NCBI GenBank assembly: GCA_964247055.1
Contig: OZ176051.1
Location: forward strand, 5,580,001-5,644,000
DNA from: Paragordius varius
Taxonomy: Eukaryota; Animalia; Nematomorpha
Length of the DNA stretch: 64,000 nucleotides
Direction: 5' to 3'
Part shown: positions 3,067 to 57,049 of the stretch, in pieces
How the letters are laid out: each line of letters starts with the position of its first letter
Numbering within the stretch: position 1 is the first letter of the stretch
Translations under genes and position numbers: made by a program
The notes under the pieces: generated by a model
The model's input: the letters and a program-made list of their open reading frames with translations, nothing else
Told to the model about the DNA's origin: nothing
Databases searched by the model: none

Positions 3067-6000
3067 CTGTAAGAAAAGTGAAAAAGTTAAATTTGTTTGA
3101 AATGTATATGTATTATAGCAATTAAGCTAATTCATATTTGAGGACAGTTTTTCAATGATGAATTAAGGAACATTTTAATTAAATGTGCTTAGAATTAGGT
3201 ATATTTTTCTGTAAAAATGTGACATTTCAGTTAATATTAGGTGTAATCCCCACTGGCAAACATACACATCACTATAAAGAAATTAAGTTCAAAGCAAATT
3301 CATTTGAAAAATCTTTATTTCTAAATGAAAAATTTAATTTTTTACTTTATCTCTGTTAATTGAATTTCATAAAGTTTGAAATGCATTAAAAAATGTCATA
3401 TATAGTTATTAAGGATAATTAAATTATAATTATTTGTGCCGCTAAAATTAGACGTTTAGACTCTTTGTAATGCTTTGTGATAGAGAAATTTGTGCAACAC
3501 ATATATCCTTTCTGTTTTCATCAAATTGTGTGTTACAAAAAAAAATTGTTAATATCATGAAACCTTACAAAAATATAATTACATAATTGCATTAATATAC
3601 GCGTATGATAACAACGAAAACCGTTGTGAAAGTTATAAAGATTGGTATGTTTAAAATAATCTGAAAAAGTTAAAAAAATAGAAAAAGTATAAATTTTACG
3701 TTTAAATATCTCAAGATATCAATACTTTATTACTGTTTTGCGGTAATTGTACCCACAAATACTCATTATAAGTTTTTGGCCGTCAAATTTTTTTTAAATT
3801 TTTTGTTAGATCGTCAAAAAATAACATAAAGATCCGGTTAAAAAATTGTTAACATGAGATTTTAGGATTTGTTTGTTTAAAAGGGATTTGGGTACAACTT
3901 GAAAATTAATTATTAAATTATTTATACGAAAGGATATGATAAAAATTCGAGCTTGATTTATTTTAGAAAAAGTGTTTTTCATGTATATTTCAGTCTTTTA
4001 TCCGTTTATACTTTAAAACTATATTCCACCTCTTAAAAATATTCATTAAATTAAAACAAAGTATGCTTTTTTTAAAATTTTATGCCATAATAAAGCACAT
4101 ATTAAGGTTCGGATTGCGTATCGGGCATTTGTTCATTAAAGAATTTAAAAATTTGATACTATCTGAGTCTACATCTAATATTTAAAATTTATTAAAATTT
4201 TGTTTACCTTTTTTATAGTTCATGATTATTTGCATAATGTGTGCTAATTTTGCGATTATATAGTTATTACCACACATCTGAAAAACGTAAATGACTCATA
4301 GGCAGCAAATTAATATTATCTGATATATTTAATTGAAATATCCTCAGAATATTTTTTAATTGCACTATAATTTAGTATATTGAACATATATGTACACTCT
4401 ATAGATAGATAAATAAAAAATCCCTAAAATTTCAAGAAGTTTATCATATAAGAATATATAAATATTATGCAAATATAGTTAAAATTATACTACTTTATGG
4501 AATCAAAGAATTATGTTTTAGTGATATCAAAAAACTTAAATTTAGTCGTGTGTCTGTATCCTACACCTTCATATGTTTAGCTTTAACTTCGGCTAAAACG
4601 TAGGACTAAGTTAAAACAAATTCATAAATAATTTAGTATGCAGTAAAAAAACATTTTTATTTAATACAAAATGTTGGACCTTGTATATTAAAGTTTTACA
4701 ATGCATAATAAACTTGAATTTTGTGGATGTAATACATACTTTACCTAGGAATTCAAGATAGGCGATATTGTTTCATGCATAGTCCCTGTTTTAATTTTAA
4801 AAGCTTCTTCGTACGATCAAAGAATAATAATTCAGTAAAACAAAATAGATAATAAATAAGAAATGTAGATATTTTTACTAAAAATTTGTCATTTTGGGGT
4901 AGTATGTTTTATCTCAAATCATATAAATTTGAAAATAAACGTTTTTACTAATTAAAATGCGAGATAAAATAACGGTAAAATGTATGCATATAAATGTATT
5001 GATTTACAGCAAATAATTTCTACACCTGTATGATAATGAAATAAAAGATGAAGTAGGAGATCTAACTCCGAAATCATTTTTTATTTACCATTTACTATAT
5101 CACTTTACACTTTTTATTGCTATTTTTATCGATTATTTATTATATTGAGAATTTTATTTATTAATGTATTCTGCTATATATTAGCGTAGGATATAATTAA
5201 GTATGCACTGAAAACCAGGGCCTAGTTAAGCCAAACTATTGTCTATTATTGTATTTAAAGTAAAACCTTTTATACATTTAATAATGAAAATAATTAAATA
5301 TTTGTCATGCAATATATTTTAATTTTTAAACCTATATACATATCAATAATTAAAAAGTCCTATTTTCGCTTTCTACGGTAAGAGATTCTAAAAAAATTGT
5401 ATAAAAACACCAGCCATTTCAATTATAAACTGTGGTTATATAATCTGATATAAAGGGTAAGTATCTATATAATGCCAGGAATTACAACAATTTTACGACG
5501 ATTTTTTTCGTATTTTTGCTAGGGTAATCATATCTAGTGTTGTAAATCTGTAACGGCACAGGAGCTACGGTTGGATTAAGCATGGTTAAGTTTAGATTAT
5601 TCGATTGGGTCAAGGTTTGCAAATATAATTTTAACCAATGACCAGCACGATTTGAACCGTGGACATGGCGATTAAATCGTAGAATCGAAAATGATAAATA
5701 TTATCGAGATAATCATATAATAGAGAATTATATTTATTAGTGTGAAGGTCATGCGGTTTTACTAGTCATATTGGTAAATATATAAAAATCGTTGATGTTA
5801 GGCACATTACTCGGTTCCCAAAAATAAATGTTAAAAAATCATCTATAATTCGTTAGTTAAGAGCTTCAGGAAATGAATATTGAAATCATAAATTTGAGTA
5901 AAATTTTAGAATAAGGTTATATTAATACTTAAGTTATTAGCCAAAATTAAAAAAACGTAATTAGGTCATAACAAATTAAGTATAGTGGAGGGAAAACTCG

Positions 6001-6182
6001 AGTTAATTTATTTTTTAATAATTATCATAAATCCTAAAACGCAAAATATTATCAATAAAACATTTTTTCAGAGTCTTTGAAGGACATACAGGAATCAAAA
6101 ATAAAAAATCGTCTTTTGGCGTCAATTTGAATTATTTAACTTGATTTTGTGCGTAAAAGATTTAAATTACATTAATATATAA

Positions 6183-7099
6183 TCTATATATTTATAAAAT
6201 GGAAAATGCTGGCTTTGTGATCTGGTACAGGAAAACCGGTAGACCCAATCAAATCCAAATATCGAAAAAATATAATCATTAATAAATGTCCCGACAATAG
6301 CTTCGCCCTTTTTTTGAAATAGGCCCCCAGTTCGGGCCCACCCCGTATGAAAAACGGGTTTTTTTAAAAAACAGAAGTCCACAAAAATAATTTTTTAAAT
6401 CGATTTTTCGCCCTAGGTATGAGACCGTAAAAATTCTATATGGATTCCACGTATTCCCTGTTAAAAGGCAAAAATTTTAGTCTACCGTTTATTTGATGAT
6501 AGCTGCTGGGTAAGGAGCTACCCGCTAAAAACTGATTTTTCATATAACTTTGTGATCTGTTTCCGGAAAACCGGTGAACCCAATCAAATCCAAACATCGA
6601 AAAAATTTAATCATTAATGAATGTCCCGACAATAGCTTCGCCCTTTTTTGGAATTAGGTCCCCAGTTTGGGCCCACCCCGTGTGAAAAATGGGTTAAGTC
6701 AATTTTTTGGAGAACGTGTTGGACCATTCAATTTCAAATATGATTTTTGTTTACTTATTTTTGATCGCGCTGAACACAGTCGACTCACTTTTTTGATTTA
6801 GGCCCTCTTTTTACCTGCTACCCCCGTAAAATGCCATTTTTTTCAAAAAAAAACAAAGTCCACAAAAATATTTTTTTGATTGTATTTTTTTGCCCATGGT
6901 ATGAGACTGTAAAAATTCGAGAAAGATTTTTCGTATTGCCTGTTAAAAGGCAAAAATTTTAGTCAAGCGTTTCCTTCATGATAGATGCTGAGTAAGGAGT
7001 ATCTATCATATGTATAGCATTCGAACTCCCCCCCCCCCCCCCCCCCCAGAAGTCCGAAGGACTTCCTCGGGCTGCGTAGCAGCACGAGATTCACGCTAG
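6183..7099 (+). mobile_element. Non-autonomous Helitron-like element (copy B)
   Basis: 5' A|TCTATATATTTATAAAATG; 3' CTCGGGCTGCGTAGCAGCACGAG hairpin then CTAG|T; extra perfect hairpin GAAGTCC-GAA-GGACTTC (7049-7065) after a C20 run; internal duplication (~6210-6400 vs ~6545-6700). Confidence 0.8.
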
Positions 7100-7348
7100 T
7101 TTACTATATATATGGAGCTTACTCAATATATTACGTTCAAAAAATGATTTAAGCCTTATATAAAAAAATAATTTTTTTTAATTTGCACCAAAGCGGAAGT
7201 AACGTAAAATCTTTACGAATCATCCATCAACTAACAATACAATTCGAGGAAAAACGTTCTATCCACTCAGTTTTTTGATTAAGGGGGTTTTTATGTACCA
7301 AGGCCGAGATCAATAGCAAAGAAATATTCAATCACTTTATCGTATATA

Positions 7349-10300
7349 TTATTTATTTTGAGTAAATTTATCAGTTCTTACAAGCAATTTATATATGACA
7401 AATGCTAAAAATTTATCTAAATGATCCATAGCTCCGCGCTGTATCCATTTAGGAATGGTTAAACGTGCATGATTAAAACCCAATTTTTGAAGTATAAAAT
7501 CTACGCCATACGCTTCTAATTGCTGCCCTTTCCATGAAATTATTCTAATAATAAACATAAATAATAATTTAGAAAACAAAAAAAAATATTTATGTAAGAG
7601 AACCAATATATTATAATTAATGTGGTGAATTGCGAAAAAACGGTATATAACTCATTAATAAAATTATATTAATGGTAATCCATGACAAAACTAAACGATT
7701 ATAGAGCGATTTTTTGGGTAATCTAAAATTTCACTTCTTTAATATGACGCAAAAAACACGTGTTAAGGGGCCAAAACAAATGGCCTGGCCTCGATATTTT
7801 CATTTTTTGTAAGTTTTAATTCCAATTTAGAAAATTCTTTATGTAAATTATCATAAAAATTTCCTCATTGTTTTTATTTTTCAAAAAAAACTGTTGCAAA
7901 CCTTATTAAAAATTATTGCAGCCCAAATGCGGGCTGTGGGTTAGGTTAAAAATATAAAAACCCAAATTTAGTTAACTAAATATTTTTTACAATGGTGTCC
8001 ATTAAACTATTTACCGTGTTATTTATTTCAGTAAAGAATATCACACATACTTTATCGCAATAAATGTGAATTATAATCCGGAATCTGATTGTGTCAAAAT
8101 AATTTCATGTAACATAAACTTTACGTATAAATTATTAATAAAATATACTGAGATTTTTTAACCCATCAATGGGCGTTTTATTTTAAACTTATACATTTAG
8201 TTAGGTTTCCTTAAAAGATCAAATTTTATACATTAAGAACGATCAAGTTATTCCCTAAATTATTGAAACAAAATTGGATTTTATAAAATCAATTGTAGGT
8301 TTTAAAAATTGGTTTAAATATAGGTCAATAATATGTATCCTTTTATTAAATTTAAAACAAAAATTTTATGATGTCTCTTATTTCAAAGAAATTAATTCCA
8401 CCTTAAAGTTGGTTCAAGTTTCCACGTACGACATGTAAACGATCTAAAATCATCGTGAACTTGCTTTATATTTTCTGTGGCGTAGGAAACCGGACTTGAT
8501 GTTAGTTTTTGTCCTATGTATAAAATTAAATTGATTAAGTAAGCGATATAATTTTATTCAATTTGTATATAAACGATTTAGAAAAGAGAAAAAAAACCAA
8601 AATTTTTTGAGCTATAAGATATGATTAAATCATGTAGAAAAGCCAGCAATTCTGCATCTACAGACACAAGGATATGACTATCGAAATCGGATAAAAAGTC
8701 ATAATGGACTTGAAAATTGGTGATTGATTTATTTTCATCTATTTATCATTCAATAATAAATAAAGGAATTAGATTTTCTATCAAACAGTATCCATTTTAA
8801 TGGTTGGTTATTTCACACAATTGGGTAATTCGCAATCCAGTAGTGTATGGAATAAACAACAAAATATTTAATAAATAATTTTTTCCTTTCTTTTTTCCAT
8901 AGAATACTGTGTTGCAGCCCTACTATAGTGTGAAATCAATCATAAAATTATTATATAATATATTTTTTATGCGTTATTGAAATATAATATCAAATTTAAA
9001 GAGAAAGCATTTAAAGTAAAAGGCTAACATTTTTTAGAACATATTTTATAAATAATGATTATCCATAAAATTATCGTTTTGGATTGCGAAACAAGCAAAA
9101 AAGGAATGTTGTTGTAATTATTTATTTCACAATTGATGATAATAATAATATAGGATATGTGGGAAAATATGGGAGGAAAAACATGATACTAAAATTTATC
9201 CTTTACTTTCTATGTTTTGTAATTATAGTTTTTAAATTATTACCAGTTAAAGAAGTAATATCGATCAAATGCTCAGTTCGTAAGCTTAATTGCAATTTTG
9301 GTAAAGAAAATATGGTGTCTGATGACATATTCCGGAATTCTTTGGCACCTATTGTTTTGATTCCCGTGGTAGGAAGAAAATTATCCACATCTAAAAACAT
9401 AATAAAAAACAGTTAAAGGTGCTCCTAAGAAATAAACTTACAATATTATAGGTTAATGATAAAAAAGAGACATGTTACTGAAAGAAATTTATATAACTGC
9501 TAGTTGAATATAAATAGGTTTTCGACAGATTAAAATTAATAAATGAAATGTTTAACCATCTATGGAGCTTTTAAAGAATGCATAATTGCACCATTCCTGG
9601 ATCGAGGATGACTTGGGTGGAACGTAATTACCGCGTGTAATTTTCATAATTACGGCCATTTCACTACATACCTAAGTCATTAAACAAAAATTAACGTACT
9701 TTCTTATTTTGTTAAATTTATTACAAAGTTTTGTGATAGTTTCCTTATCAAGATATCATTTATATTAAAACCAATGATCGGATAAGACTTACATATTTAT
9801 TGGGTTCAGAATCTTCTCGCCCAAGTTGAAACACAAAATTTTGATCTATATCAAGCTCGGGTAGCATAGCTAACAAATATAATTATAAATTAACCAATAT
9901 TTTACAATTAACAACAAATATGATGTATATATATTCTAATAAAATATACCCATAATTTCTGTATTTATGATTAAACTATTAGCATTATTTTCCGAAGCGG
10001 AACTATTATTCACCGCACTTTTGTTTGCTACTACACATGTCGTTTGAAAATTTGGTCCAGAGTTAACGGAGGTAAACACTGCATTTATTTGTCTCATACT
10101 GAAGATTGCCCACGTTTTGGAACGGAAATTTATACCATAGAAACAAGCAAGAGATAGGTGATTCCCTTGAAACGAATAAGAACCACCAAGCATCAATGGA
10201 ACTTTTTTGTCTGAACTCGAAAATCTAACCTATATATATACATATATATATAGTTTCTCATCATAAAAATTTTTTAAACGGTAATGAAGTACATAATCAT

Positions 10301-49685: not shown

Positions 49686-51151
49686 ATGGAAAAAACTACA
49701 ATCCTCTTTATACTAATAAATTCATTTGGTGTATATGCATGGCCTAGAGGTGCTCCCCTTGAAGCCTGTGATACTCAAACGCCAAGCCAAGAAAAACATG
49801 GTCCATCTTTGGTGAATTCCGATTTACCACCACCGTATCAAATTATTCCTTCACAGGATAGCATTCAGGATGGAGATATAGTGACTGGTAAGGTGACTTT
49901 TTTTAAATATTTTTCTTACACCCGTTATTTTTTTCTGCATCTTTCTTATTTGAATTTTATGTTATTATTATAACCAAATTAGTATATGCAAAAAGTCGTA
50001 TGCGATGTATTATAAAAAATGGATTTTCCATATATATTTTCTGTATTTCATCATATGTATTAATTTCATTCCTATGTTTAGTCCAGATTGTAGGGGGAGA
50101 CTACAAAGGCTTTCTCCTACAAGCCCGATCCATGTTTACTGACCAAAGGGTAGGAGAGTTCGTGAACCCTCCTAGAGGAACCAAACTTTTAAATTGTTCA
50201 CAAGCTAATGCAATTACACATGACGGTAATCGAACCTCTCTACAGGGTCTTACATATACTTGGATATCGCCTGGGATGGATGTTGGCACCGTGAACTTTT
50301 AGTAATTATCCTTTCATTTTTATCAAGATGACTTAACAAAAAAAATATGGTAGATTAAATTAATTATGTTATAAAACACATATTTTATAACTAATGTAAA
50401 AATTTTATGTATTTTTATTAGTTCAATCGCAATTATAAATCTAATATTATAACTGGAAACTGCGCGCTTACAACTGTCAACTTGGGCAGACGAGTGTCTA
50501 AACTTGTCCTTTATACATTTCAGTTTTAATTGAATATTAAGAGTATTATTTTCCAATCTATTTATAAACTGTTGTATAAGTAGGGTTGGCAATAACCGCG
50601 TAGGAAAGAATTCCGTAGCTGTGACTACTAAAAAATAACCAATTAGATTGGTTTTACATATGTCTTTATGATATACAATTAACATAGTATAATGGACAAA
50701 AAAACTACAATAGAAAACTTTTCTTTATTTGTTATTAGATTATGTTATAAAGACAAAGCAATTTTACTGTAACATAGTGCTTATATTTCTAAAAAAGGTT
50801 TTTTTCCAAAAATATTTTTTAATTTTAGGAGCAATTTTAAACACGTTACCTCAATACTTAAATATTTGGACCTATAATTTTAACACTATCTAATAGCTCT
50901 AACCAAAAATGAGGTGTGAAATTTATTTAATCAAATAGTAGTCAAGTGGATTATAATCATTGCGTCCCTATTCTTATAATGACAAGAGAATTAAAATATA
51001 TTATCTTTTGTATTTACTTTTTATTCAACAAATTCTATTAATTTAAAATTCTTACGATCATATTAATATTTATATGAATATTAGCGCTACAGTGGTTAAA
51101 GAAAAAAAATTATATTGGGTCGGAATAAAATCTATGCCATTAGCCCCGTAA
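49686..51151 (+). CDS. Secreted stand-alone Reeler-domain protein (~160 aa; exons 49686-49887, 50082-50301, 51085-51151)
   Basis: Signal peptide MEKTTILFILINSFGVYA, then WPRGAPLEACDTQTP, YKGFLLQAR, CSQANAITH, TYTWISP, VNFYATVVK...YW, which are typical Reeler/defense-protein motifs; splice phases are consistent. Confidence 0.88.
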
Positions 51152-51320
51152 TTCGTTTCACTGTCCCAAGTCTACGCACAATTATATAAATATTTAAATT
51201 AGTTAATTTATTGCAACATGTAAGGCAAAATGTATAATTTTTTTACAAATATGCATGCAAAGTGCAGAATAAATATAGTGTCTGAAATATTGCAAAATAA
51301 ATTATTTGTTTTTCAATCAT

Positions 51321-52828
51321 TCAATCAACAGTTACGATTCGTATTGTATTTGTGTGTCCGGGACCTTCGCGCCAACCCGTAGCTAAAATAATGGTATCTC
51401 CCTTATTAACTAATTTAGTTAGTTTGCCAGAATCTATCCCAAGTTTTACCCGCTGATCTACATCAGCCAACCAATCCGGTAAAGGTTGACCTAATGCAAA
51501 TATAAATAATTTGCACGAAATATAAAAACTCAATAATTTAAGGCAAAACATATCACTCTTTATCGGTGTGTAAACTTTATTTTTGTTTATCGGAATCCTT
51601 TTTTAAAAACTAACCGCACCGGTTACAATATTCCTTATTAATTCTATTATCATGCGAAGTTGACCGTTTATATCCCCTAGATTTGTTGAAAACATCCAAA
51701 AGCCAGATTAATTTTAATATCCCTTTTTGGTATGAATTGGGTAGAAAGCGCCTTTTTGATTTACTAATGTGTTACCGCTCAAAAAAATTAACGGAAAAGC
51801 GGCTTTAAAGTGTAAAAAATATAACGCATTATAGATATTAAATATTGACCAGTTTATTTAATATGGACATGTTCTTTAAAGAAGAAAATTGTGTTAAAAT
51901 GATTTATTCATTAGCATTATGTGAAATAGTCAATAATACGAGGTTAGTTTTTTCCTTCTATACAATGTTAAAAAAAATAAAAAACTTGTTGATTCACATA
52001 AAGATCTGAAAGAGGCTGATTAAAAAATATAAAAGTGTGCTAAAGTTAATACTTACTGTCACAAAATACTGATCTCACTCCTCTGTAAACATGCAATTGA
52101 GCACAAATTTTCCAAGATCTTGACACAGCAACTATCATGCATTTGGGTCGATATTTGGATATAAGTGTAGCCGTTCTAAAAAAATATGATAAATTTTCAA
52201 ATCAATTCGTTTTACAAATTGATGATAATTAATTTGTAAACAATAAATCTAGCAATTAATGTAATATGATTTGGCATTTGACGAATAAATATATTTAAGA
52301 ATTATTCTCCTCTATAAATTAAATTAATTCGACTGTTTACCAGTCACTAAGAGTTAATATATATCTAACTATCCAACAGCGCTCCATATGGACTCAGGAT
52401 TTTATTCAATTAAAAAAGCGCACAATAAAAGTTTATACAAAATATTTGATATCTCTATTACTTTCCAGTTTGGGTTAGAGTTATAATTGCTTTGGCATTG
52501 CATTTGATAGAGGCTTCAACGGCCGATATAGCGATGGCTTCAGTGGGATCCACAGCAGAAGGCAAAATATCCAATAAATTTTGTAGGATATGCTTATGAC
52601 ACAGTGTTGATTCCGCCTCCAAACTAATCTACTTATTGTGCAACAATAGATAATGTAATTTCTCATTTTTTGTAAGAATAAATAAGATAATTTTAACTGT
52701 AAGAATAATTAATCACAAATTTTACTATAATTTAATTAATTTTTAAATTAAATTAAATCAAATGATATCGATGGTCTTAAATCCATAGTGTTGTGAACAA
52801 AAAAATATTGCATTTTAGGTATGTTTGT

Positions 52829-52874
<46 letters not shown>

Positions 52875-55800
52875 TTTTTAAGATTTGCGTGATTATTTAA
52901 TATTTTCCATTAATAGCATATATATTAAATAATAAATGGGCAAAACTATTAATGAATAATTGTTTTGAAAAATTAAATCCTAATTTTAAATATTTTAATT
53001 CTTTAACTTTTGACATAATTTGTATCGCTCCAACTGGATATTTTCCTTTAGCTGTTTCCCCGCTCAACATGGTACAATCTGCACCATCAACAACTGCATT
53101 ACCTACATCGCTAACTTCCGCTCGGGTAGGTCGCGGGTTAATGAGCATGCTTTCTAACATCTATTACGTGTAGCAAGCATTTTAAAAATATTTTATATGA
53201 GAAATTTTTATTTTTAACTATTTTAACATATGATGAGATACAATTACTTGAGTAGCGCATATACAGGCCTTACCAGCAACATTGCATCGTGCAATAATCA
53301 TTTTTTGAGCTAAAAACACCTTTTCAGGTTCAATTTCAATGCCCATATCGCCTCTGGCCACCATTACCCCATCCGATTCGTTTATGATTTCATTGATGCT
53401 TGAACAAAATAAATTTAGTTTACATTTAATTAAATTTAGTTTTTAGCGTTTAACTTTGCAAAATCAATTACTTTTTGAGGCCTTGATACGACTCCACTTT
53501 AGCAATGACTAGAGTACTTTTACCATCATCGCCTAGTGCCTTTCTAACTTCCTTTACGCCGGCTGCATCACGCATAAATGATGCAAAGATTATGTCAACC
53601 TTCGAATATAAAATAATAAAATTATAATACCGCCTGAAAATTATTTACCATAATACTTTAAAACAATATTTATCTTAAAATATCAAACCGTTTAAGGGCA
53701 CTTTATTAAGAATTATATTATTGCTACAATATAAATTATTGTTGTGTTCCTGACTTTCCAGATATTTAATAAAGATCTTACTTAAAACTAAAATGCGCTT
53801 ACATTATTTGCTACGCCAAATCTAATGTCATTGTAATCCTTTTCAGAAATGGCCGGTAAATCCACAAACACACCTGGTAAATTAATACCCTTAAAGCTAC
53901 CAATTTTACCACCATTTTCTATCTGGCAATCCAGGAAATCGTTGCCTACAAAAAGAATTATAGTGAGAGAACATGATTAAATCAATATATATTTTTTTAC
54001 ATTTTTAATAAGGCAATCAATACCTTTGCTTTTGACTATAGCAGAAATTATTCCATCGTCAATGTAAATTTTATTGCCAACCGATAAAGATTCCACGAGT
54101 TTCGGATAATCAACATAAAGGATGTTGGCATTTCCAGCTTTAGCATAATGCTTATCAATGGTAAGTCTCAAAATTTTGCCCTCGACCAGTGTTATTTCTT
54201 GAATGTTTGGCTTTAAACGTGTTGAAAATATAAACGATTAGTTAGTATAAATTAAGGATGAGTTTTCTCCTCTAAAGAAAGATTTTTTCATTTTAAATAT
54301 CTAAAATGTTTCAATTATAAAAAAAGAAATCAACACACGACTTTTAAATAAATTGAATATTAGCCAGCATTTTAAATTTTGGCTTATTATACCAATCACC
54401 GTATTATCATATGGATCTAATTTTAAATATTACATCTGTATTTTATTTGGGGTATCTGAAAAAATTATAATCAATTTTTTGTTTGTATAATGTTTAATAT
54501 ATAAAAAATTATTTGCAATAAAAGTAAAATTGAATTATTAAATTAACTCATACCTCAAGAATACCAGTTCTAATCTTTGGCCCTTTGATGTCTAACGCTA
54601 TTGCGACCGGTACTTTGGGTTTAAATGTGTCAATTGCAGCTCTAATATTGTTGATGGTACCTTTGTGATACTATTACGTATAGATATATGTTATATCTTG
54701 TAAATTATTAATCCATTATTTAATTATTGGCAAAACTAGTTGATAAAATTAAATATTAATATAAGTAATCTAATTTTAGATCACGTTTAACATCGGCCCA
54801 CTTAAAGGTAAGCGTGTCCAACACAAATAGCTTCGCGGACGGCATTTTCAACTCTAAAAAACTGGTAGACCGCATTCGAAATATATATATATGGGTATTT
54901 ATTAATTTGATTTCAAACAAAGACTAAAATGTAGAAACACAAGATAGCAATTTTTTCTAGTTCCTACCAATCGGATAGATTAATATAGAAAAATGGTTTG
55001 GGTGATATTGATTTTGTTAAAATTTTGCCAGCATATTTTTGAAAATTATCAAGTTACAAATTTTTCAAGGGCCGCCGCATGTAAAGTCTCGGAGGGCCGC
55101 GTGTCTGACACACTTTTGCTCTAAACATTTGAATTTCCGTAGACTGTCCACAAAAAAATGAAAAAAGACCCCAAAACGGATTTGTTACTACTGCTCAAGG
55201 CCCATATAATCACCATTATTTTATATTTAATTTAGCAGTGATTTATTTTAAATGCGTTTGTGGCCCTTAGCCAAATTATAAAATTTATAAAAAAACAATT
55301 TTTCCTAAAGCCCATTAATCTGTAAGTGTAACCATTACTTTTTATACCTCCCCCCCCCTTCCCCGAATCAAAAAACTATATTTTTGCATACAGGCTACCC
55401 CCATTTTTCACATTGTTTTAAATTTTATTAGGTATGTTTTGAATATCTTAGATAAAAGTAGCATATCTCTCAAATTTTACCGTTAATATGTCAATACTTT
55501 TTAGCAATTTATATAATTAAGCCAATGTAAATATGAAAGTGAAAAAACCAAATTAACAAAAAACTATGGAAAACTGGACCAAAAAAATCAAAAAAAAATC
55601 TAGAATCGAAACCTACAAAAAAAAACAGATTGAGTGTTACATATTTCTTAGCAACCCTAATTCTTGCCAAATATTATGATGGTGTTCGATAGATTTGAAT
55701 ATAATGGTAACTTTAATAAAACAAATGAGTTTCTAGTTTAAAGGTTTTAAAAAAATTATTCCGACAGATTCTCTGTGCAAATTATCATTAATATCCCTCA

Positions 55801-56319
55801 TATAAATATAGCAGATCCACGTGACATTAAATGAGCTGAATAAATTGTAAAAAAATTTGAATATCAGACAAATAGCAAAAAACAGTACAAACCATTAAAC
55901 CTATTTTTCGAACAATATTCAAATTATATACCTTACCCCTGATATTATTAAAAAATAAAATTTTGTTTAAAATTAACACATAATACACAAAAAATGATAA
56001 ATTTTCCCATAAAGATACTTCATATCAATATTTCAATTTTAAAGTTAAAGTGTTCAAGGGTAAATTTGAGGTGTAAATGGTGTATATATATATATATAAA
56101 TAAATTACCTCATGATCGCCATGTGAAAAATTTAAACGAGCAACATTCATACCAGCCTTAATCATTTCGATTAAAATTGAGACATCTCTTGAGGCCGGTC
56201 CTAAACACAACAATTTAAAGGGGAAAAATATTACCAATGGTACAAATAATTCCAGTTTTTCGTAAATGCCCAGGAATTTGATCGATATTTAAATCACAAG
56301 CGTGTTGTAAGTTAATCAT
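51321..56319 (-). CDS. PK: Pyruvate kinase (multi-exon), with a K+-independent-type signature
   Basis: [100 protein letters not shown]; canonical GT-AG introns. Confidence 0.97.
52832..52871. repeat. (TA)n microsatellite; similar tracts near 962-990, 20266-20290, 26580-26598, 27543-27574 and 29720-29748
   Basis: Direct reading of TA dinucleotide runs. Confidence 0.9.
54810..55115. mobile_element. Degenerate hAT (Charlie-like) MITE in a PK intron
   Basis: Imperfect TIR AAGCGTGTCCAACAC vs reverse complement AAGTGTGTCAGACAC; GGCCGC subterminal motifs; no intact TSD. Confidence 0.45.
56050..56085. mobile_element. Solo right end of MITE subfamily 1 in a PK intron
   Basis: GTGTTCAAGGGTAAATTTGAGGTGTAAATGGTGTATA resembles the right terminus of 37701-38042. 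Confidence 0.5.
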
Positions 56320-57049
56320 GACTTCTTTTGCGTTTATTTAGAATATTCTATAGAATTACTATATAACTAATAATACTATTTCAAAAAAGGATAAGGCATT
56401 TCAATAAACAAATTTTATTTTTACGTTGACATTGTAGAATAATAATTTAACTACCTCAATACTGTTTTATCTATTTAAAGGAATCATAAATATATTTAAC
56501 TATTCAGCTATGATAACTATTTTTTTAATTTACTAAATAATTAGGGCGTTTACTGGTTTGATTATATAATGTATAAAAATAATTATTTATTACGCACGTG
56601 GTTAAAAGAATAAGAGATAAAAGTTGCTTAAGAAACACACATCTATGAATATCAAATATCAATGTTCTAGATTTAAAAAATCAATAATATAAATATAAAT
56701 CTAATGAGGCTATGATTAAATTTTTGTGCAGGTAAAATGTTTCTACGGCTTAAATTGTTAAACATATTGCATGCATATTTGACGGTGCCCGTGTATGCTT
56801 CTAACATCCTTGTTTATTTATATTTATATCTGAGTTTTAGCAGAATTTTAAATCCTGAATGTAATCTCCCTATTTAAGCTAATACGTGTAAATGAATCAA
56901 ACAACTCAGTTTGATTTTTATCTAAGATAGATAGATATTTGGCGAGTGCCCACATGTGGGCGTTGGCCTTTGGAATAATGTCGGTTCGTATGCTACGGTT
57001 AAGCCTATTATTACTCGACATTTATCATCAAATATAATTATTAGTTAAT

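Follow-up and report, generated by a model that had tools for sequence, protein, structure and literature searches.

A pyruvate kinase gene of the horsehair worm Paragordius varius with a signature predicting K+-independent catalysis

The pyruvate kinase gene and its potassium-site motif

The window, as the whole 64-kb stretch of DNA analysed here is called, belongs to a contig of the horsehair worm Paragordius varius (OZ176051.1, positions 5,580,001 to 5,644,000) and carries on its minus strand a gene of 11 exons for pyruvate kinase (PK), the enzyme in which a requirement for a monovalent cation was first demonstrated. At the loop of the K+ site the gene reads DIKGPKIR, with Ile and Lys at the positions of Thr113 and Glu117 of rabbit muscle PK, whose numbering is used throughout, and the enzyme is predicted to turn over without K+. 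The motif and its key codons are located as follows.

54569..54592, minus strand: K+-site motif, D112-I113-K114-G115-P116-K117-I118-R119, codons read directly
54587-54589, minus strand: Ile113 codon ATC, within the motif
54575-54577, minus strand: Lys117 codon AAG, within the motif
54566-54568, minus strand: Thr120 codon ACT, directly after the motif

Read on the minus strand from 54592 to 54569, the codons GAC ATC AAA GGG CCA AAG ATT AGA translate as DIKGPKIR, exactly the eight codons reported in the initial annotation; the plus strand of the same interval translates as SNLWPFDV, a peptide unrelated to PK. The equivalence with rabbit positions 113 and 117, also claimed there, was confirmed twice. 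HMMER alignment of exon 3 to solved PK structures placed DIKGPKIR opposite the DTKGPEIR of the rabbit, human and insect (mosquito) enzymes, and an alignment of 105 sequences placed Ile and Lys at positions 113 and 117, with Lys114 and Thr120 unchanged.

Read support was taken from four sequencing runs, all represented by DNA contigs, at a likeness threshold of 85 that let repeats in and left the tables noisy. A Logan contig from run X1 (346 bases, 54323-54668, depth ~235) agreed with the window without mismatch across the whole of exon 3, including the motif. Because X1 may be the source sample of the assembly, this contig rules out an assembly slip but does not represent an independent individual. 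For a second individual with the same species label (run X4), the listed pieces end at 54573 and restart at 54623, and the motif is neither confirmed nor contradicted. An error of sequencing or assembly in both codons, for which only the rarity of the Ile113/Lys117 state speaks, is extremely improbable given the identical contig built from the run's own reads, the need for two separate, non-adjacent base changes and the resemblance of the two changes to a known covarying pair.

The splice model and its translation place the motif within the following gene.

51321..56319, minus strand: whole pyruvate kinase gene, 11 exons, 10 GT-AG introns, coding sequence (CDS) of 1512 nt, 503 aa, uninterrupted
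56235..56319, minus strand: exon 1, aa 1-28, ends ...ICTIG|, 3' intron position and phase the same in animal PK loci L001 and L002
56201-56234, minus strand: intron 1, 34 nt, ancestral position common to other animals
56109..56200, minus strand: exon 2, 92 nt, Arg72, Asn74, Ser76 and His77 (ARLNFSHG), including the K+ ligands Asn74 and Ser76, Pfam PK profile 12-41
54554..54670, minus strand: exon 3, 117 nt, 39 aa, K+-site loop, Pfam PK profile 42-77
54024..54210, minus strand: exon 4, 187 nt, B (lid) domain, five synonymous allelic differences
53803..53945, minus strand: exon 5, 143 nt, Lys206
53472..53599, minus strand: exon 6, 128 nt, Lys269 and Glu271 in AKVES, Ser for Asn272 and Thr for Ile264
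53248..53398, minus strand: exon 7, 151 nt, Gly294, Asp295 and Thr327 (MVARGDMG ... CATQ|)
53008..53160, minus strand: exon 8, 153 nt, begins MLESM, Ser361 and Glu363
52462..52628, minus strand: exon 9, 167 nt, opens the C domain and holds the first portion of the effector loop (LTQTGK|)
52057..52175, minus strand: exon 10, 119 nt
51321..51490, minus strand: exon 11, 170 nt including the stop codon, C-terminal effector-site loop

All ten introns are GT-AG and range from 34 to 1438 nt, the second being the one of 1438 nt. Exons 2 to 8 tile positions 12-328 of the Pfam PK barrel profile (PF00224), with six of the seven pieces individually above the 30-bit cut-off. Exon 11 scores 31.7 bits against the PK C-terminal domain (PF02887; cut-off 28 bits), and exon 9 covers positions 1-26 of the same profile. 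The 5' end of the model is provisional and an upstream exon is possible. No second PK-like sequence was found in the 64-kb window by tblastn, nor an alternative duplicate of exon 9 in its flanking introns.

The residues required for catalysis are preserved. In the 105-sequence alignment, R72, N74, S76, H77, D112, R119, K206, K269, E271, G294, D295, T327, S361 and E363 are identical to the vertebrate reference, and among the substrate-, Mg2+- and K+-binding residues checked only 113 and 117 differ. Across 215 near-invariant columns (conservation of 98% or more among 91 animal PKs from outside the worms), the P. varius enzyme has changed 33, compared with 41 in the PK of Trichinella and 48 in that of the acanthocephalan Pomphorhynchus. 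Since both of these more altered enzymes retain Thr113 and Glu117, the K+-site changes of P. varius are not a product of general decay. Run X1 contains two haplotypes of roughly equal depth (~199 and ~226), and all six exonic allelic differences listed for it are synonymous, a small sample because the read table for X1 and X4 holds the best-supported differences only. At the allelic level the locus is under selective constraint.

Heterozygosity is high across 51000-56900, where X4 shows only the alternative letters at many of the X1 haplotype sites, together with many small indels in intron 2. Within this intron the summed contig depth rises from ~450 to ~5,500-8,900 at 54743-54939, is ~1,800-2,700 at 54940-55136 and reaches ~85,000 at 55925-56121, and dozens of contigs break at 54814, 54848, 55942 and 55976; the peaks mark dispersed repeats of high copy number that have inserted into the intron. 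Intron 8 contains a (TA)n microsatellite of ~60 nt at 52822-52881. Scanning the window for Rfam families and tRNAs returned no matches, and the ten longest other open reading frames (ORFs) had no Pfam match. Across the whole window CAGCTG occurs only twice (57167 and 57509) against ~3 expected from base composition, with no occurrence in the PK exons, and AWCAGCTGWT does not occur.

Ancestry of the gene and of its signature

Over its full length the P. varius PK is 53-55% identical to insect and fish PKs, ~54% to vertebrate PKM and 49% to Trichinella PK, and exon 11, which encodes the C-terminal effector-site loop, matches animal PKs only among solved structures. Three maximum-likelihood trees were built and rooted with E. 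coli PykA and PykF, and all three placed the P. varius enzyme inside the animal clade with 100/100 support, on a long terminal branch (1.17 to 1.31). Its nearest neighbours are Trichinella, Pomphorhynchus and a compact animal-like genome, L005; because all three have long branches the exact sister is uncertain. The L005 contig is one of four (L005-L008; Logan SRR11455650/51, ENA ERZ23489137/589) from a gene-dense, animal-like genome recovered from metagenome samples, with ~10 genes in 20 kb, short introns and 41% GC. Its PK pairs with that of P. varius (97/88, both on long branches) yet retains DTKGPEIRT.

The exon structure points in the same direction. Each exon peptide aligned over its whole length with the PK loci of two other animal contigs, L001 and L002, with AG/GT present at the extrapolated ends; all ten intron positions and phases are common to these loci. 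The four that the initial annotation had matched to vertebrate PKM (CTIG|P, HE|YH, ATQ|ML and TGK|T) are among them, together with the other six. The intron-poor PK of L005 reads through most of the ten positions. The exon lengths of vertebrate PKM, which we take to be 92, 187, 271, 151, 153 and 167 nt, compare with 92, 187, 143+128, 151, 153 and 167 nt here, and the exon 3 residues that flank the motif match insect and vertebrate PKs. Judged by sequence, the gene is a native, animal-type pyruvate kinase. The initial annotation had classed it as such and had named a PK phylogeny as a check; the 100/100 animal clade, the 55% identity and the shared introns uphold that assignment.

The motif itself is not confined to this gene. 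When a back-translated pattern of the ten-residue signature was scanned against one genome per prokaryotic species, 59 species of bacteria and archaea had the identical signature, nearly all of them Alicyclobacillaceae or related Bacillota, with a single Micrarchaeota genome besides (L012-L070), and seven JGI metagenome contigs of the same bacterial type also carried it (L071-L077). These bacterial carriers are 48-50% identical to E. coli PykF, of the Glu117 type, and 40-42% identical to PykA, of the Lys117 type.

This identity of signature is what could be said for acquisition of the gene, or of the motif exon, from a bacterium with a Lys117 PK, be it of the classical K+-independent cluster or of the Alicyclobacillaceae type. 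The remainder of the protein does not follow the motif, being only 42-44% identical to the bacterial carriers as against 55% to animal PKs. In a tree that included the carriers, these formed a group of their own and the animals with the P. varius PK remained a 100/100 clade. Forcing the P. varius enzyme together with the carriers was rejected by the approximately unbiased (AU) test (log-likelihood difference, delta lnL, 80.8; p = 6e-7). The ten introns at animal positions include both flanks of the motif exon, and the residues around the motif within exon 3 are those of insects and vertebrates. Horizontal transfer of the gene or of exon 3 is ruled out by the tree, the AU test, the introns and the flanking residues, and its probability is negligible. 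With a common origin rejected by the AU test, the signature is convergent: by sequence comparison I113/K114/K117/T120 arose independently in the bacterial family and in this animal. Convergent change in a native gene, rather than transfer, was also the reading of the initial annotation, and the AU test and the 100/100 clade bear it out.

Among animals the signature stands apart. Of the ~140 full-length animal PKs retrieved, a set dominated by fishes and insects, none has Lys117. The motif is DTKGPEIR(T/S) in 130 of them, and the few that depart from it are degenerate, PK-like proteins altered in other ways. The loci L001, L002 and L005 likewise read DTKGPEIRT. Five of the degenerate proteins (P0099, P0017, P0114, P0130 and P0145; 495-567 aa) have altered K+-site and active-site motifs, among them DIRGPEIMT, DLQGPEIRI, ETKGAQMRT and DLRGPTVHI. 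In the trees they fall within the insect PKs, each with a very long branch, and they are probably paralogues that have lost catalysis or taken on another role.

Relatives of the worm were sought by several routes. No horsehair-worm PK was present among the best 120 of 8000 PKs of the profile search, mostly from fish and insects; the motif exon, searched by word index, shared three words with no fragment; and a search of a representative library with exon 11 gave no match above 56% identity and no horsehair-worm relative. The exon-8 ORF retrieved fragments at most 82-86% identical, with the contigs L005 and L009 coming from other organisms. No natural animal PK with Lys117 was found in the literature searched, and the group that defined the two PK clusters gives Glu117 for the PKs of Eukarya (PMC4374775, PMC8835810). 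Measured against the literature searched, Lys117 would here be on record for the first time in a natural PK of a eukaryote.

Predicted catalysis without potassium and its origin

The signature of the P. varius enzyme, Ile113/Lys114/Lys117/Thr120, is a hybrid. Members of the K+-independent cluster II carry L113/Q114/K117/(L,I,V)120; of these features the worm enzyme has Lys117 and a hydrophobic residue at 113 (Ile, not Leu), and at 114 and 120 it has Lys and Thr, the K+-dependent states, in place of Gln and Leu, Ile or Val. It also lies outside cluster II in the trees, grouping with animals on the PykF side and far from PykA. The initial annotation had described the motif as the K+-independent signature, which holds at 113 and 117, where both residues have changed in the direction of K+-independent enzymes, and fails at 114 and 120, where the K+-dependent states are kept.

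What such a hybrid may do is suggested by mutants of rabbit muscle PK, in which K+ is liganded by Asn74, Ser76, Asp112 and the carbonyl of Thr113 (PMC8835810). The E117K enzyme needs no K+, its lysine providing the charge from within the protein, and its crystal structure shows Lys117 facing the active site (the chain with TKGPKIR is PDB 7r6y). The mutants E117K, T113L/E117K and T113L/K114Q/E117K show a kcat that climbs along the series from 35% to about half of wild type and are not activated by K+ at constant ionic strength, and in the mutant series the Km for free Mg2+ is raised 10-50 fold (PMC8835810). Any rabbit construct with T120L is inactive (PMC8835810), so the retention of Lys114 and Thr120 in P. 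varius would be the combination that works in an animal scaffold. According to PMC8835810 and PMC5501398, all characterised Lys117 PKs are K+-independent.

From these mutants we infer activity and K+ independence for the P. varius enzyme. Within the lineage, Thr113 would have become Ile and Glu117 Lys, each by one GC-to-AT transition, with Lys114, Thr120 and the catalytic and metal ligands kept. The ammonium group of Lys117 would then supply the positive charge that bound K+ gives in ordinary animal PKs, and Ile113 would lower the polarity of the cation pocket, as Leu113 does in bacterial K+-independent PKs. Turnover in the absence of K+ is predicted, probably at a somewhat reduced kcat and with a far greater need for free Mg2+, as in rabbit T113L/E117K. 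On balance it is probable that this gene encodes the worm's own functional PK and that the enzyme is K+-independent through the charge of Lys117 together with Ile113.

Two further positions may belong to the same change. Ile264 and Asn272 lie beside the catalytic pair Lys269 and Glu271. PykF has both, and animal PKs hardly ever depart from them, yet both are replaced in all three Lys117 lineages compared: by Thr and Ser in P. varius, by Ala and Arg in PykA, and by Ala or Cys (264) and Thr or Ala (272) in the Alicyclobacillaceae-type PKs. The recurrence across three lineages is only suggestive of a role for 264 and 272 as second-shell partners of residue 117.

Why the two changes became fixed is a separate matter. 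The initial annotation had proposed adaptation to a low-K+ host or spore environment, which is unsupported, as a horsehair worm is no spore former and both changes are AT-favoured single transitions. PK is cytosolic, and the animal cytosol is K+-rich whatever the surroundings. An account that competes with adaptation, and leaves the mechanism as it is, holds that Ile113 and Lys117 are tolerated products of GC-to-AT mutation pressure, with no ecological adaptation to K+. The GC content is 22-33% across the window (27% in the genome), 39% in the CDS and 24% in the introns, and ACC to ATC (C-to-T) and GAG to AAG (G-to-A) are single transitions from the usual Thr and Glu codons. Phe, Tyr, Met, Ile, Asn and Lys (FYMINK) make up 31.4% of residues compared with 26.4% in canonical animal PKs, and about half of 23 departures from near-invariant residues are to Ile, Lys, Asn or Met. 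The rabbit mutant series offers a viable stepwise path, in which E117K alone would keep a third of activity and T113I would then improve it. This account, path included, is given a chance just short of even. Telling against it, the more divergent PKs of Trichinella and Pomphorhynchus keep both residues, a sign that the site is as a rule firmly conserved, and the Alicyclobacillaceae, presumably not AT-rich, have fixed this very pair, which hints at selective or structural coupling. As a cause of fixation, AT-biased mutation with tolerance is at least as likely as adaptation.

Several points weigh against the view of this gene as the worm's functional, K+-independent PK. Ile is not Leu at 113, the scaffold is 55% identical to the rabbit-type enzyme and the mutant data apply by analogy only. 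K+-independent enzymes can still bind a monovalent cation (PMC8835810), and a literature search for work on Alicyclobacillus PK brought up no biochemical study of the I/K/K/T enzymes. The N-terminus, possibly incomplete, begins ~20 residues later than that of most animal PKs, and the contigs of all four runs are DNA, spanning the introns without splice joints. The search for PK copies covered the window, and a canonical Glu117 paralogue elsewhere may carry the bulk of glycolysis.

In the last case the gene would be a divergent side copy, tissue- or stage-specific or weakly active, with a canonical Thr113/Glu117 enzyme doing glycolysis. Animals can carry extra PK-like genes, as the five degenerate proteins placed among insect PKs show, and the long terminal branch would fit such a copy. 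The P. varius PK nevertheless keeps all catalytic residues, unlike those degenerate proteins, and has altered fewer near-invariant columns than the annotated Trichinella and Pomphorhynchus enzymes; the allelic differences listed are synonymous only, and the window holds no second copy. A side copy is for these reasons considered unlikely.

The gene bears on a working rule by which eukaryotic PKs have Glu117 and need K+, and those with Lys117 make up a cluster of their own that is largely prokaryotic (PMC4374775, PMC8835810). With Lys117 in an otherwise K+-dependent signature, this natural PK of an animal runs counter to the rule. It serves besides as a natural test of the mutant work, by which Lys117 and a hydrophobic residue at 113 should be tolerated in an animal scaffold only as long as Thr120 is retained, as is the case here. 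That a bacterial family within the K+-dependent cluster has the identical signature points to a two-step route between the catalytic modes that evolution can repeat, and the effect on the physiology of the animal may be small. Tentatively, and at somewhat less than an even chance, a fuller proposal may be put forward: that this enzyme is the only glycolytic PK that horsehair worms possess, that it is expressed, and that it is the first natural case of K+ independence in a PK from an animal or from any eukaryote, a natural repeat of T113L/E117K reached by the two-residue route of the Alicyclobacillaceae, with coupled changes at 264 and 272. If true, the switch from K+-dependent to K+-independent catalysis would be reachable by two point mutations within the K+-dependent cluster, and repeatedly so.

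Comparison with known pyruvate kinases

Canonical animal PKs (vertebrate PKM and PKLR, insect Pyk and Trichinella PK) share with the P. varius enzyme the gene structure, domains, catalytic residues and effector-site loop, the form GWREGPGHT of this loop being common specifically to P. varius and Trichinella, in keeping with the place of horsehair worms as sister group to the nematodes. They differ in that all those retrieved read DTKGPEIR(T/S) and need K+ where studied.

The classical cluster II enzymes (Oria-Hernandez et al. 2006; E. coli PykA, Mycobacterium tuberculosis PK) resemble it in Lys117 and the hydrophobic residue at 113, and in both Asn74, Ser76 and Asp112 are kept and Asn272 and Ile264 lost. 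They differ in having Gln114 and Leu, Ile or Val at 120 (L/Q/K/V in E. coli PykA), and they form a separate, deep branch. Cluster II enzymes are typically regulated by adenosine monophosphate (AMP) and sugar monophosphates, whereas the P. varius PK keeps the animal-type effector loop.

The Alicyclobacillaceae-type PKs (Alicyclobacillus, Tumebacillus, Effusibacillus, Ferroacidibacillus, Sulfoacidibacillus, Kyrpidia and related Bacillota, with one Micrarchaeota genome) have the same I113/K114/K117/T120 and, as in P. varius, a residue other than Asn at 272. They are bacterial and intron-free, with 42-44% identity and a rejected common origin. To judge from their residues, they look like a natural hybrid, seemingly family-wide, in which the K+-dependent and K+-independent signatures are combined, and the fixation of I/K/K/T across a bacterial family marks it as a viable natural state.

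The closest parallels are engineered. In rabbit E117K and T113L/E117K (Laughlin and Reed 1997, as cited in PMC8835810; Ramirez-Silva et al. 2022, PMC8835810), Lys117 sits in an animal scaffold with Lys114 and Thr120 kept, as it does here. T113L/E117K is the nearest match, with a branched hydrophobic residue at 113, K+ independence and ~35-50% of wild-type kcat. The P. varius PK differs from these mutants in being a natural gene, in having Ile rather than Leu at 113, in being ~54% identical to vertebrate PKM and in carrying further changes near the active site, Thr264, Ser272 and Met296.

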